A stretch of DNA of 64,000 nt from Octopus bimaculoides (GCF_001194135.2 NC_068994.1:4774490-4838489); one strand, 5' to 3'. Positions 11,440 through 30,891 are shown, counted from the first letter of the stretch. Made by a program: numbers and translations. The notes: generated by a model from the sequence alone, not told the origin.

Positions 11440-13902
11440 TCAACAGTCTAGATGTAGCATTTTTATTACCAGCGAAAAATATGTGCATTTATTAATTTCT
11501 TTCTTCATACACGTAATTAAATTTCATCAATCCAATTTAGTCGACTTTCAAAAATTATTTTAATTAAAAGACAACATTATTACATTACTAAAAAGTGAGG
11601 GACTTATTTGTCACATAAAAAAAGCAGTCCCTACCGAAATTAAGTCCGTCTGGAAATTAATACGCCGGATTATCTCCCTTTTGTTTACATTTCCCAAGCT
11701 TTGTAATCGACTCCTTTAAAAAGTTTCTAGTAAAAAAATTGAGTAAATAAAAACCTTAGCTTCGGCTCTGTCTGTGTGTCACGTAGTTCTTTCGCTCCTT
11801 ATCTCCCCCTTCCTCCTTCATTTTCACTCTCTTTCTCTTTCTCAGTCTCTTTCTATCTGTCTGCCTTTCTTTCTAGATCGGCCTGTACCTACATAATAGC
11901 GCGCACTCTACTTTCTCTCTCCCACCACGTTCGATCGACCGACCAACTGACATCGTCTTCATCCACATCTAAACTACTCTTAATCTGCCTGCTTTTTTTC
12001 TTTTCCTTTCTTCCTTCCTTCTCTCTCTCTCTCTCTCTATTTCTTTCTTCCTTCTACACTTTCTCTCTCTCTCTCACTTTCTTTCTCTCCTTGTCTGTCC
12101 TATATATACTCTCTCACTCTTTCTTTCTCTCTCTCCTTGTCTGACTGTGTTGCTGTCTAAAAACCACTCTCACCACTGCTGCTGCCCAGGTTGGTATTAC
12201 AGTTTCATCCATCCTCTATCCCTCTCTGTCCCTCTCTCATTCTCCTATATATCTCTCTCTTACTCCCTCCTCCTCTCTTCGACCACATCTTTCTCCTTCA
12301 CACCCTTTCTTTCTCCCCCTCCCCCGAAGTCCAGTTCTAACCATTCCAGCCAACTTTGCTTGAACTGGTCACTAGACTTTCTTCGCTCAAACTCTTCCCG
12401 CTCTCTTTAAACTTTCGGGAAGCTGAATTTAAAAATGGCAGGGAAACCACAAACTATCAAACACGAAAGAGAAAAAAAACATTACTACGTTTTTTAAAAT
12501 CTTTTTCTCTTTTCTTTTCAATTTAATAATTATTTATTTTGCCATTATTCATTATAATAATTTTTCTCTTTCTTCGTACGTGGTCTCCTGTAAATTTCAT
12601 TGTGTTTATGTCTACAATCATATACATATGTATATATATATGTATATATATATATATATATTATATTCAGTTATTTATCGCCAGGTCAACCGTGTTTATA
12701 TAGAGCTAGACTGCATTATCCCTTGTGTCTCTCCATTTTAAGACAATAGCATGTGATTTGAGGGAGATGTGGCTGTTATTCACATCCAAAGTCTTAAAAA
12801 CGGGAAGACACATTGGAAGATGTAGTTTCGAATACAAATACGGAATGGTCACCAGTTTAAAACCTTTTATTATCAACGGTATTCAGTCAGGACAAACCTG
12901 ATATTTATATACAAATACGTATTGTTGTTTACCCCAGGGTAAACCCCATGATCAAAGTGGTTCCAGCCGTGACCATTCCGTCCCTTTTGTGTACCAGAAT
13001 CTACATTGTCCTATGGTACATCTATATCTAAAATGCTAGGGGATGATTTGAGAGAGATCTAGCTGCTATTTCGAAACAACCACCTATCTAGCATTTGTAG
13101 TTTGCATTATACATATATATATATATATATATACACATACACACATATATATATATATATGTGTGTGTGTATGTATGGATAATTTAGAATGTATAAGAGT
13201 ATCGACTCATTAGCACAATTTAGTGATATCCTTATATTTTGAGGTTTGCTAGCGTGGATTTGGTGGAAAAGAGGAGTGGAAGACGTGTTAAATGAGTTAA
13301 TTATATGCAGCTAATTTGTACGAGGTTGAGTAATTACATAAAAGCATGTGAACCAGGCAGTCAACCCCATTAATTCTTTTGTGGTCAGCTTCTCAATACT
13401 TTTGACTTAATGACTCCGAGAAACAATCAAAAATAGTCAATAAGGAAACCGCATGTGTATGTGATATATATGTATGTCTATATATATATATATATATATA
13501 TATAAATGAAATATTCAAACACTGAGATTTGAAGTTAGATATATATATATATTGCGTGTGTTGTAAATGTACATTGAAACATGTATATATATATATTGTC
13601 TTATATATACCTATGGATATTTATGTATGCATATGTAGGTATGTCTATATGGATATAAGTAAATACATGCATACTAAGCTATATGTATATGTGTGTGTGT
13701 ATTATGTGCGTATGTGTATACTCAAAGTATATTACAACTATATATTTGGAAGCATGTATATCGGTGCTATGTGGATATATACGAATATTTATATAGACCT
13801 GTATGTATGTATGTATAAAGAGAAATGTATGCATATAACAGTATGTACACGCAATCACACAAGATAAAGGCATATATGTATGTATTTATATGCTTCTACG
13901 TA

Positions 13903-13943
<41 letters not shown>

Positions 13944-14921
13944 NNNNNNNNNNNNNNNNNNNNNNNNNNNNNNNNNNNNNNNNNNNNNNNNNNNNNNNNN
14001 NNNNNNNNNNNNNNNNNNNNNNNNNNNNNNNNNNNNNNNNNNNNNNNNNNNNNNNNNNNNNNNNNNNNNNNNNNNNNNNNNNNNNNNNNNNNNNNNNNNN
14101 NNNNNNNNNNNNNNNNNNNNNNNNNNNNNNNNNNNNNNNNNNNNNNNNNNNNNNNNNNNNNNNNNNNNNNNNNNNNNNNNNNNNNNNNNNNNNNNNNNNN
14201 NNNNNNNNNNNNNNNNNNNNNNNNNNNNNNNNNNNNNNNNNNNNNNNNNNNNNNNNNNNNNNNNNNNNNNNNNNNNNNNNNNNNNNNNNNNNNNNNNNNN
14301 NNNNNNNNNNNNNNNNNNNNNNNNNNNNNNNNNNNNNNNNNNNNNNNNNNNNNNNNNNNNNNNNNNNNNNNNNNNNNNNNNNNNNNNNNNNNNNNNNNNN
14401 NNNNNNNNNNNNNNNNNNNNNNNNNNNNNNNNNNNNNNNNNNNNNNNNNNNNNNNNNNNNNNNNNNNNNNNNNNNNNNNNNNNNNNNNNNNNNNNNNNNN
14501 NNNNNNNNNNNNNNNNNNNNNNNNNNNNNNNNNNNNNNNNNNNNNNNNNNNNNNNNNNNNNNNNNNNNNNNNNNNNNNNNNNNNNNNNNNNNNNNNNNNN
14601 NNNNNNNNNNNNNNNNNNNNNNNNNNNNNNNNNNNNNNNNNNNNNNNNNNNNNNNNNNNNNNNNNNNNNNNNNNNNNNNNNNNNNNNNNNNNNNNNNNNN
14701 NNNNNNNNNNNNNNNNNNNNNNNNNNNNNNNNNNNNNNNNNNNNNNNNNNNNNNNNNNNNNNNNNNNNNNNNNNNNNNNNNNNNNNNNNNNNNNNNNNNN
14801 NNNNNNNNNNNNNNNNNNNNNNNNNNNNNNNNNNNNNNNNNNNNNNNNNATATATATATATACATACATACATATACATATATAAATGTCTCCATTTCTT
14901 TTTTCTTATTCATACACACAC

Positions 14922-14964
<43 letters not shown>

Positions 14965-14992
14965 TACATACATACGTGTCTGTGTGTATGTG

Positions 14993-15042
<50 letters not shown>

Positions 15043-15684
15043 AAATGTTTTATTTATAGATGAGGGAAATGTGGAATTTTTGAGCTGAAATGCCGTTCCC
15101 ATGGAAATTAACGACTTAAATGAAGCTGTTCCGACCAGAAAGCGAAACCGGTTCATTAGTCCCTGGACGAACTATAAAACTAATTCAGCGGACTTCTGAT
15201 CAAGGACAATCCAGCCACGACTATCCCTTCCTTTCTTTCTCCCACTCCGGACACCTACTGCCGTATTATCCCTCTTATCTTTTATTGTTTTCAGGTAGTA
15301 GGGTGTAATTTGAGGGAGGTATTGAGTGCTATGTCGAGCAGCTTATGAGACCCACAGAAGTGCCCTCATAATACCCATATTTATTGGGAATCATCTCAGT
15401 TGTGCTTATATATATATCCATTTAACCCTACACACACATATAGAGAGAGACAAAGCACATTACATTCATACATTCCAAGGTGTCTACTCGCCAAGTCATG
15501 CTTAATTGAAGCTAATCTGTATAATTACATTTCAAGTCGCAGTCATCGCTTCCATCCTCTCCAGCCTTTCCATAATTTTAACCTAAAGACTGCACAAGAA
15601 TATATCACAAATAATTTCGTTCTTATCCACTTTGAAACCAATCATTCTCTTTTCATTTTCTAATTACTCGACGTCCGATGATGA

Positions 15685-27785: not shown

Positions 27786-30186
27786 ATGTATCCGATACAA
27801 CCAGTTTTTCCAATGAATTTCAACAACACTTCCGGCTTCTACGGTCAGCCGATCTACAACCCTGGCTGCCATTTAAAAGTCCCTGATAAGTCACAGATTA
27901 TGAACATTCTTGATAAGAACAATGACTTGTTGTGGAAAGACTTCAGTCCAGCAAACGGTGCCAATGACGGCACCAGCGGAAGCCATGGTGCAGACAACAA
28001 CAGTGGTAGTAACAACATGTGCATGACTAACAGCGGTGCTGCTTCAACATGCAGTAGCCCTGGCAACAATACTGGTGGTGGTNNNNNNNNNNNNNGGGGC
28101 TGGTGGTGGGGCTGGTGGTGGTAATAGTGGTGGTGATGGCAGTAGTGGTGGCAACACCAATGACAACAACCAACCAGATGGAGACAGCATGCGAAACAGT
28201 CAAGGTGGAAATGAGAAATCTTTCTTTTGTACATTTTGTAAGAAAGGATTCACCAACCAGTTCTTCTTGAAGAACCATGAGCTCACACACACAGGCGTTC
28301 GACCATTTGACTGCAATTCTTGTGACAAAGCCTTTACGCAGAAAATCAATCTCAAAAACCATTTAAGGACCCATTCAGGGGAGAAACCTTTTCAGTGTTC
28401 CCTTTGTCCAAAGGCCTTCAGTCAACAAGGTAATCTCAAACTCCATCTTAGAACACATACGGGAGAGAAACCATATTCTTGTGAAGTCTGTGGTAAAAGT
28501 TTCTCCCAAAAAATCAATTTGACTTACCACAACCGTATTCACACTGGAGACCTTCTCTATTGTCAGTTCTGCAAGAAACCATTTTCGAATGAGTTCTTCC
28601 TCAAAATACATGAACGTATACATACAGGCGAGAAACCTTTTCATTGCCATTTCTGCAACAAGTGTTTCTCACAAGAGACAAACTTGAAAAACCATTTGAG
28701 AACACACACTGGTGAGCGACCATTTTCCTGTAGTGTTTGTTCGAAGGCTTTTAGCCAGAGAGGTAATTTAAAGCTTCACCTTAGAACGCACACTGGAGAG
28801 AAACCATTTGCCTGTGATGTCTGCGGGAAAGCCTTTTCACAAAAAGTAAATCTAAGCGACCACAAAAGGCTACACACTGGAGATCTGTTCTATTGCAACT
28901 ACTGCAAGAAACCGTTTTGCAATCAATTTTTTCTGAAGATTCACGAGCGGACGCACACTGGAGAACTTTACAAATGTACATTTTGTCCGAAAGATTTCAC
29001 ACTTTTGATCAACCTGAAGAACCATCTGAGGACTCATACCGGAGAGAAACCATTTCATTGCAGTATGTGTTCAAAGTCTTTTAGTCAGCAAGGAAATCTT
29101 AAGTTACACATGAGAACTCACACGGGGGAAAAACCATTCAAGTGTGACCTTTGTGAAAAGTGTTTCTCCCAAAAAACTAATCTTGAAAATCACCAACGTG
29201 TCCACACTGGACAATTGTTTAAATGTGACTATTGCACCAAAGAATTTACTTTGCAAATTAGCCTGAAAAACCACATCCGGGTCCACACTGGAGAAAAACC
29301 TTTCCATTGCAGCTATTGTAACAAGCTCTTCTCACAGCGAACTGAATGGCGTAACCATGAGAGAACCCACACAGGAGAAAAACCATTCCAATGTCAGATT
29401 TGTTCGAAGGCTTTTTCTCAAGCTGGAAACTTGAAGTTACACATGAGGACACACACGGGTGAGAAACCATTCAAGTGTGACACTTGCAACAAGTCGTTTT
29501 CGCAGCGAGCCAACTTAAACAACCACAAAAGGACTCGAACGGGCTGCGAACTTTTCACCAAGCAGCCACCGTTGGCCTCTACTGCTTCCTCATCTGCCTC
29601 TCATGGCTGTATGATGTACTCCAAAGACTCCAACCTCTCGCCTCCAATGCCAGGTTCGGACCCTCTCCCTGTGATGGGATCATCCATGATGATGTCATCT
29701 GAAGACAAGAATGATAGTGACAACCATCAACACCATGAAAAGAGTGGTTTGTCCTCAGCTTCTCAGACATCCACATATAACTGTGATACGAGTGCATCGA
29801 AACCTCAGCAGCAGCAGCAACAACAACAGCAACAGCAGCAACATCAGCAACAGCAAGCCCATCAGTCTTCCATGTTATCATCAAATTCCAACAAGCACAA
29901 CATGAAAACTAACAAACACCATCAAGAACATTTACCAAATTCCCATATGGGACGGTCAGAGCAACACCTTCATCCGGCTCAACAAGATTCCCAGACTGGA
30001 ATGCGACTGCACCCCTCAAATCTGTCTCGGTTTAATTCTGCTGCATATCTGCACGAGATGTCACAGAACTGGGAGACCAACTACCTCTGGCCCAGAGGCT
30101 ACCCTATGCCCACGTTGCTCGGTTCCAGCTGGCCAAACATGCCTACGTCTTACTCTAGCGGCAAACACGGTAAACAGAACTCGTGA
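27786..30186 (+). CDS. C2H2 zinc-finger protein (ZNF-2), ~800 aa, 16 fingers, Gly-rich N-terminus, polyQ and Trp-rich C-terminus
   Basis: ORF 27786-28124 (MYPIQPVFP...NNTGGG) and ORF 28036-30186 (GAGGGAGGG...fingers) join across a 13-N gap at 28083-28095, whose estimated length shifts the frame. The start mirrors ZNF-3 (MYPVQ). The finger array spans ~28228-29547; the last finger has His replaced by Arg. Confidence 0.9.
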
Positions 30187-30891
30187 GCCAGCCTGCAAAC
30201 TCTGTTCGGACACTCTACGGATTCCGTTGGGAATCTCTTGCATCCAAACTGACACATGTGACACGAGGACTTGTAACATTTCTTAAGACATGTCTTAAGT
30301 TGTCTTATTAATCATTAGCCACATGTCGTCTCCAAGCTGACAGAACTCACCAACGGCTGTTCAACTAACTTCCTCAAACATGTCAGGCTCTTTACGATCT
30401 GTTTGTCAGGTTTCTGTGGAATTTTTCAGGTCAATTGGCAAAAATTCATTTTTGTATTAAAAGAAGAAAAATCAAGAACAAAACAAGAAGAAAATAACCC
30501 AAAAGAACTGGATTGTGATGGTGCAAATAGACAAAAACAATAGTCAGTCACATTGTAAAAATTTGACATTGAAAACTTTTCAGGGATCCTTTTCCTAAGA
30601 ATTTATTTTTGGATCCTTGTACGTTGTGTGTTCAAATTTCACCGGAATTCACTTTGCCTGTATCATCGTCTTTCAGGGATTGATATTAAAACAAAAACAA
30701 AACAAAAGTACCAGTCATATGCTGGGGCAAGTTTTAATTGAATGCACCCCCTAACTATAAATCTCTGGCTTGTCTCAATCTGAGAAATCATTATGACAAT
30801 GATGATGGTTATTGTTACTTCTATTAAAATATCCCTTAGCAGTTCAAATATCAGAAGCACTGGATCACTCCCTGACATTTATGCTACCATT

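Follow-up and report, generated by a model that had tools for sequence, protein, structure and literature searches.

A conserved tryptophan-rich C-terminal block in a small group of C2H2 zinc-finger proteins of octopus and cuttlefish

The C2H2 zinc-finger repertoires of cephalopods are among the largest known, with ca. 1,450 C2H2 sequences reported for Octopus bimaculoides (PMC12513265), yet neither PMC12513265 nor PMC10547256 connects an accessory or effector sequence with any of them. What such proteins may carry besides their fingers is a question raised by a 64,000-nucleotide stretch of the O. bimaculoides genome (GCF_001194135.2 NC_068994.1:4774490-4838489; hereafter the window), situated on chromosome CM046614.1 at roughly 4.774-4.838 Mb. 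Three long C2H2 open reading frames (ORFs) are present in the window, ZNF-1 (1349-3316, minus strand), ZNF-2 (plus strand) and ZNF-3 (minus strand), of which the last two lie 13 kb apart in one cluster and share a Trp-rich block near their C-termini. A reading made from the sequence alone (the sequence-only reading) had proposed this block as a candidate lineage-specific effector domain. The block is real and conserved, and no description of it was found in the libraries and papers searched (the two cited above); it is best classed as a new linear motif associated with zinc fingers which, together with an N-terminal partner motif, defines a small ZNF subfamily of coleoid cephalopods.

The shared block and the proteins that carry it

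The block common to ZNF-2 and ZNF-3 comprises 34 residues of the pattern Y[LI]H.M.Q.WE.NYLW.RG[YF]..P.L[LI]GS.WP (Table 1). The sequence-only reading had placed it at 30052-30186 on the plus strand, whose translation is exactly the one given there, and, for ZNF-3, at 43288-43413; these latter coordinates are correct for the minus strand, on which the ORF 43225-45942 includes YIHGMPQSWENNYLWSRGFAVPPLIGSAWPSVTCASKQNKQNAW, while on the plus strand they give a nonsense translation. The two copies had also been aligned without gaps, which holds for the core of ca. 30 residues but not for the stretch elided in that alignment, where the lengths differ by three residues. Comparison of the post-array tails of ZNF-2 and ZNF-3 by BLASTP gives an E value of 1e-14, with the identity concentrated in the Trp block, and when either block was searched through the whole window by tblastn, two copies only were detected (E about 1e-14), the next best hit having an E value above 1.

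The conserved region extends further than had been described. A small block of the family pattern [RK]DSQ...R[LP][QH] is located ca. 20 residues upstream of the core, and on the downstream side ZNF-3 and its relatives continue with KQ.KQ..W..[LIF][QP].[MI]H......K-stop, a distal part that contributes a fourth Trp. The three Trp residues of the core are invariant in nine of the nine sequences gathered. In ZNF-3 and in the relative called gene A, both its octopus and its cuttlefish version (687-905 amino acids), every Trp of the whole protein (4/4) falls within the C-terminal block and none in the fingers or linkers, the spacing being W-5-W-13-W-14..19-W. Small residues flank the first and the fourth Trp (SWE and AWG/TWN/SWT).

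A second conserved block, MYP.QP.[FY]P..GN..N...Y....LK.PEK, occupies the extreme N-terminus and begins at Met1 in every complete member; searched alone against Pfam, it gives no match at E<=10. The two blocks are always found together in complete members, the layout of which is fixed: the N block is followed by a long array of fingers and by a fast-evolving linker of low complexity, and the Trp block lies close to the C-terminal end. In ZNF-2, ZNF-3, octopus gene A, and cuttlefish genes A, B, and C, the N block, the array and the C block are all encoded in one single-exon ORF.

The relatives come from an exhaustive hmmsearch of a two-sequence profile, which has a limited sensitivity to distant copies, against 1.84 billion representative proteins. 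Five true clusters were recovered (E from 3e-20 to 1e-8) along with two low-complexity false positives, and in all five the proteins are of the C2H2 type and carry the block close to their C-terminal end. The members with a source name belong to O. bimaculoides, O. vulgaris/O. sinensis, and the cuttlefish Acanthosepion (Sepia) pharaonis (three records); two clusters hold only assemblies of sequencing runs (Logan), and the restriction to octopus and cuttlefish, consistent with the lineage specificity claimed for the block, rests on the source-named matches. The O. vulgaris/O. sinensis and O. bimaculoides records are titled "zinc finger protein 2 homolog/ZFP2" (P0001 and P0008). Word-index protein searches with the motif alignment, the full tails, and the concatenated N and C blocks of ZNF-2 and ZNF-3 returned nothing useful, the full tails recovering just one sequence that already formed part of the query, and as they missed the known members too, their negatives carry no weight.

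Gene A of O. bimaculoides (P0008) is located on the same chromosome as the window, ca. 150 kb from it, so that at least three such genes lie within ca. 210 kb in this species, and three were found in A. pharaonis, genes A, B, and C, each of which is one unbroken ORF, with 714, 791, and 867 amino acids, respectively. One-to-one orthology between octopus and cuttlefish is clear for gene A only (898 bits). ZNF-2 is nearest to the A group, with which it shares a variant last finger and the junction sequence, while the orthology of ZNF-3 is ambiguous among cuttlefish C, A, and B. In an all-against-all BLASTP comparison ZNF-1 stays outside the family, scoring 257-295 bits vs. 385-900 bits within it, and both family blocks are missing from ZNF-1 as judged by tblastn within the window and by its sequence. 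It is also observed that the deposited A. pharaonis models (GCA_903632075.3; L006, L007, and L008) are truncated or mis-spliced, covering 249/867, 252/714, and 503/791 amino acids, and that two A. pharaonis records are named 'KRAB', a domain undetectable in them.

Conservation of the block

The distribution of conserved residues along the protein is best seen in gene A compared between octopus and cuttlefish in windows of 20 residues. The identity reaches 17/20 in the N block and 17-20/20 in the fingers, drops to 1-9/20 over most of the linker, rises again to 17/20 in the core and is 11-12/20 in the distal part; within the linker of gene A there is, besides, another conserved stretch, C[ED]LF.K.PPLPQPPP..LS. 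In an alignment of the tails of six sequences (332 columns), 10 of the 12 invariant columns fall within the core. For the 34 codons of the core the Nei-Gojobori method gives synonymous differences per site (pS) of 0.71-1.08, i.e., saturated, and non-synonymous differences (pN) of 0.10-0.33 in all pairs of paralogues and all octopus-cuttlefish pairs. Since the synonymous sites are saturated and pN is low, selection acts on the protein. The conservation of the core is thus old and lies at the protein level, and is neither residual paralogy nor a nucleotide-level constraint. These results bear out two expectations of the sequence-only reading, namely that the block is under selection, which proves to be purifying, and that it is much better conserved than the sequence preceding it.

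The comparison of gene A between O. bimaculoides and O. sinensis/vulgaris, with three replacements, one indel, and ca. 30 synonymous changes in a gene whose flanking DNA is ca. 85-92% identical, is uninformative on the block, as the whole protein is nearly identical. At this distance the entire gene A is constrained, and the block is not singled out. In the same comparison the last 94 codons (595-688) show no nucleotide difference between O. bimaculoides (L003) and O. sinensis/vulgaris (L004/L005), and the identity is ca. 90% within 35-180 nt past the stop codon. This run without differences may be due to chance, other 150-nt bins of the array being identical as well.

A proposed docking peptide and the rival explanations

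The sequence-only reading had recognised no KRAB, SCAN, BTB, or ZAD domain in these proteins, and hmmscan against Pfam-A agrees, detecting only zinc-finger models in ZNF-1, ZNF-2, and ZNF-3 (E<=1) and in six relatives. The C block has no Pfam match at E<=10, and its profile matches no PDB sequence, so no described domain was found to correspond to it. The term domain in the sense of a folded unit, on the other hand, could not be upheld. In the AlphaFold models the predicted local distance difference test score (pLDDT) of the block is 24-58 and the sole secondary structure is a helix of seven residues. When the last 89 residues of ZNF-3 were modelled with an alignment of six sequences, the mean pLDDT was 53.6, with no secondary structure. 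In the full-length model of ZNF-3 the fingers are recognisable at pLDDT of ca. 55-77, residues 1-105 and 731-905 stay below 50, and the one element of the tail is the helix ENNYLWS (851-857), at which pLDDT shows a bump to 29-36. The reading that these sequence and model data suggest, held with about even confidence, is that the block is a conserved short linear docking peptide of the molecular recognition feature (MoRF) type, possibly helix-forming, which would be set in a disordered tail rather than constitute a folded domain, and which would mark a small, old coleoid C2H2 subfamily.

Several known classes were considered for these proteins and rejected. They are not SNAG factors, as the N-terminal MPRSFLV is replaced by MY[PS].Q in all members; the A/B box of KRAB-ZNF proteins (PF01352), expected N-terminal to the array, was not found by hmmscan, and no SCAN, BTB-POZ, or ZAD domain of Pfam was found in ZNF-1, ZNF-2, ZNF-3, or the six relatives. 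FiNZ-ZNF proteins are set apart by their description, with no consensus compared: the block is C-terminal, shares the exon of the array, is rich in Trp and Pro, and occurs in ca. three genes per genome. The patterns of the Groucho/TLE-recruiting, CtBP, HCF-1, nuclear-receptor-box, and WW-ligand classes are matched in none of the members.

The mode of action regarded as most likely, by analogy with SNAG and FOG/Sall-type factors, would be the docking of a partner by the terminal peptides. The core of the subfamily reads Y[LI]H.M.Q.WE.NYLW.R..[FY]P..P......W[PA], usually followed by the distal KQ.KQ..W..[LIF][QP].[MI]H......K-end. The sites on DNA recognised by the slowly evolving finger array would form a conserved set, and the aromatic residues would dock into a partner, e.g., a transcriptional co-regulator or another nuclear factor, which the array would thereby bring to its conserved DNA targets. 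Both the binding of a partner and its transcriptional outcome may be inferred from this analogy; none of the partner-specific patterns scanned for is present. That the N-terminal block and the Trp-rich block of the tail would together form a previously undescribed cofactor-recruitment system, which arose in coleoid cephalopods and serves a handful of deeply conserved ZNF factors, is a tentative proposal, with somewhat more speaking for its being wrong than right.

Several points weigh against the docking peptide. The distal part is absent from ZNF-2 and from cuttlefish gene C, so that not every part of the block is indispensable; the case of gene C indicates that the core can evidently stand alone. 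A regular-expression scan of ten proteins found no WRPW/[WFY][RK]P[WFY], eh1, PxDLS, HCF-1-binding motif (HBM; [DE]HxY), LxxLL, or PPxY. The AlphaFold alignments are shallow (5-6 sequences), so that 'disordered' is a weak negative. Moreover, the census of relatives is incomplete, since members may be concealed where the representative of a cluster (50% identity) has no tail, and ZNF-2 and ZNF-3 themselves are absent from the protein collection searched.

Among the rival explanations, two survive best, to an equal degree. In the first, the aromatic and proline-rich N and C blocks would bind each other, within or between molecules, and so play an architectural role like that of SCAN, BTB, or ZAD. 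The presence of both blocks in every complete member, and their common richness in Tyr/Phe/Trp-Pro, would fit such a contact; yet the full-length AlphaFold model leaves both ends at pLDDT of 22-36 and gives no hint that they pack, although the model is weak and comes with no contact map, and the explanation is judged unlikely. The second, which is hardly more probable and not less, takes the block for a nuclear import or export signal or a degron that sets the location or lifetime of the protein. It agrees with the shortness of the block, its position in a disordered terminal tail, and the mildly basic K-Q-x-K-Q stretch and conserved C-terminal Lys that follow, but no classical basic nuclear localisation signal was matched, and 34 residues with four invariant aromatic positions are long for signals of this kind.

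The explanation closest to the original proposal, that the block is a KRAB- or FiNZ-like effector of the cephalopod ZNF expansion, i.e., a module of many lineage-specific ZNFs recruiting a silencing complex, for instance against transposons, is very improbable. It is true that a short conserved sequence of no known family is attached to C2H2 arrays, that all matches with a source name are coleoid, and that FiNZ is comparably short (28 amino acids; PMC10547256). However, only five clusters were found among the 1.84 billion representatives, and three genes each in O. bimaculoides and A. pharaonis stand against the ca. 1,450 C2H2 sequences of the former (PMC12513265). Octopus and cuttlefish arrays share 85-100% of their residues and are thus not engaged in an arms race, the neighbouring ZNF-1 has no block, and, unlike KRAB and FiNZ, the block is C-terminal and shares its exon with the array. 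Because the genes found among the cluster representatives are few, their arrays evolve slowly, and ZNF-1 lacks the block, it marks a small ancient subfamily and not an effector of the expansion, and the notion of a 'cephalopod equivalent' of KRAB, SCAN, or ZAD in the sense of an expansion-wide module is not supported.

The conservation might also reside in the nucleotide sequence, as an RNA structure, an editing substrate, or a regulatory element, for which the unsubstituted last 94 codons of gene A and the heavy editing of coleoid mRNAs (PMC8382921) could be adduced. This rival is close to refuted: the synonymous sites of the core are saturated, both between paralogues and between octopus and cuttlefish, with the amino acids kept, the other identical 150-nt bins of gene A and the fall to ca. 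90% identity directly past the stop codon deprive the 94-codon run of its distinction, and the RNA fold near the end of ZNF-2 is no stabler than that of shuffled sequences (z = +0.64). Finally, chance similarity or a leftover of recent duplication, suggested by the 13 kb that separate ZNF-2 from ZNF-3 in one cluster, is counted as refuted by the E value of 1e-14 between tails with unalignable flanks, the saturation of synonymous sites, and the occurrence of the block in cuttlefish.

The locus, the end of ZNF-2 and known systems

The gene models on which the above rests are collected in Table 1. The list of ORFs had placed the start of ZNF-2 at a spurious GTG (28036-30186), whereas tblastn located the conserved N block at 27786, in a frame different from that of the listed ORF. 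The frame from ATG 27786, the corrected start, stays open as far as the gap of 13 N, and the apparent frame shift is explained by the arbitrary length of this gap; ZNF-2 is therefore one ORF. The arrays of ZNF-2 and gene A close with a finger (in ZNF-2 at ca. 29455-29560 of the window) that has Arg in place of the expected second zinc-binding His and a Cys six residues beyond the first His, an arrangement kept between octopus and cuttlefish. ZNF-1 carries a very long poly-Gln/Pro-Gln repeat, broken by a gap of 10 N (2768-2777), ahead of an array of 10 fingers. In total, the window contains 13 runs of N (2,728 bases), and the ORFs 151-1219 and 13825-15156 of the six-frame list are artefacts spanning such gaps.

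Table 1. Features of ZNF-2 and ZNF-3 in window coordinates, and positions of the N block in relatives
Feature	Position	Strand	Remarks
ZNF-2 coding sequence	27786-30186	+	single exon; broken solely by the 13-N assembly gap
ZNF-2 N-terminal block	27786-27890	+	35 residues, from Met1; tblastn
ZNF-2 assembly gap	28083-28095		13 N within a GGT/Gly-rich repeat
ZNF-2 C2H2 finger array	28228-29535 (end approximate)	+	15 canonical fingers to 29454 and a final variant finger ending HKRTRTGC; Pfam, regular expression
ZNF-2 small upstream block	29983-30015	+	family pattern [RK]DSQ...R[LP][QH]
ZNF-2 Trp-rich core block	30046-30147	+	34 codons
ZNF-2 distal remnant	30163-30186	+	KHGKQNS, then TGA stop (30184-30186)
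ZNF-2 in-frame open extension past TGA	30187-30252	+	ASLQTLFGHSTDSVGNLLHPN, then stop; 21 codons; closing TGA aligns with gene A stop
ZNF-3 coding sequence	43225-45942	-	single exon, 905 amino acids; recorded in GCA_001194135.2, ca. 4.82 Mb on CM046614.1
ZNF-3 distal block	43225-43311	-	KQNKQNAWGNLQGMHSSRNTSEDISSSK, then stop; holds the fourth Trp and the C-terminal Lys
ZNF-3 Trp-rich core block	43318-43419	-	YIHGMPQSWENNYLWSRGFAVPPLIGSAWPSVTC; predicted short helix ENNYLWS, residues 851-857
ZNF-3 small upstream block	43453-43491	-	KDSQVTTPIRPQA; family pattern [RK]DSQ...R[LP][QH]
ZNF-3 C2H2 finger array	43801-45615	-	20 fingers by regular expression
ZNF-3 N-terminal block	45856-45942	-	MYPVQSSYPIGSQQGINSQSLYQNHHLKG; from Met1
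N block in relatives	L003 10001-10126; L007 8615-8740; L008 9950-10090; L006 from 8147		locus coordinates

The end of ZNF-2 deserves a separate comment. Its TGA occupies exactly the position of the fourth conserved Trp codon, which in ZNF-3, gene A, and cuttlefish genes A and B is TGG. The frame continues open beyond it, with a faint similarity to the family only (S-L-Q ... H), and by chance a run of 21 codons would stay open with a probability of ca. 0.2, as estimated from the composition of the window (35% G+C). The simplest reading is a TGG-to-TGA truncation, or else a sequencing error or polymorphism. A lesser possibility is that the TGA is read as Trp, either because A-to-I editing turns UGA into UGG or through readthrough; in coleoids both stop-to-Trp editing (UAG to UGG) and a 'harm-permitting' restorative editing of G-to-A mutations have been described (PMC8382921). 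Folding of the RNA around the stop codon, with the z value given above, revealed no local hairpin to support an ADAR substrate, which argues against editing. The same is true of the G that is the 5' neighbour of the A in the stop codon, as ADAR disfavours a 5' G.

Among the known sequences associated with C2H2 arrays, FiNZ is similar to the Trp block in being short (28 vs. ca. 34 amino acids), in being lineage-restricted, as the block appears to be from its source-named matches, and in showing no similarity to known domains. It differs in being N-terminal, Glu-rich, encoded by an exon of its own, and present in ca. 700 fast-evolving zebrafish genes, in contrast to the C-terminal, Trp/Pro-rich block, which lies in the exon of the array in ca. 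three slowly evolving genes per genome. More generally, both tetrapod KRAB and cyprinid FiNZ are found on fast-evolving genes that number in the hundreds (PMC10547256), and the slow evolution of the arrays joined to the Trp block is the reverse of what the arrays of those two families show. KRAB (PF01352), SCAN, BTB/POZ, and ZAD are likewise accessory modules on C2H2 arrays, which give these a regulatory output or an oligomeric state; they are, however, folded or folded with a partner, 40-120 residues long, and represented by Pfam models, whereas for the Trp block disorder is predicted and the distribution is narrow.

SNAG of Snail, Gfi, and Scratch and the N-terminal NuRD-binding peptide of FOG, Sall, and BCL11A are short terminal peptides by which slowly evolving C2H2 factors dock a co-repressor. 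They constitute the closest analogy for the putative mode of action. The N block of the family likewise begins at Met1; nevertheless, the N-terminal MYP.QP bears no resemblance to the MPRSF or MSRRKQ of these peptides, and the C block has no counterpart there. The WRPW/VWRPY and eh1 peptides bound by Groucho/TLE and the GW/WG repeats are docking peptides based on Trp, situated in disordered C-terminal tails of transcription factors or adaptor proteins and read by pockets of the partner. The Trp block is similar to the WRPW and GW peptides in being centred on Trp, in its location in a C-terminal tail predicted to be disordered, and in the small residues beside the first and fourth Trp, but differs from them and from eh1 in that their patterns are absent from all members and that its four Trp fall short of the numbers in GW proteins.

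Of all C2H2 genes, coleoid-level duplicates are reported to have the highest expression, with an association to nervous tissue (PMC12513265). The Trp block supplies no general effector for the cephalopod repertoire, and it cautions that a conserved block beside a finger array need not be a KRAB analogue. What it defines is a small, old, and strongly constrained subfamily, the non-finger parts of which are directly testable, and the two terminal peptides with the four invariant Trp offer an entry point to what cephalopod ZNF factors recruit. Should the two blocks indeed form a cofactor-recruitment system of coleoids, the four Trp residues would be a handle on a regulatory partner specific to cephalopods.

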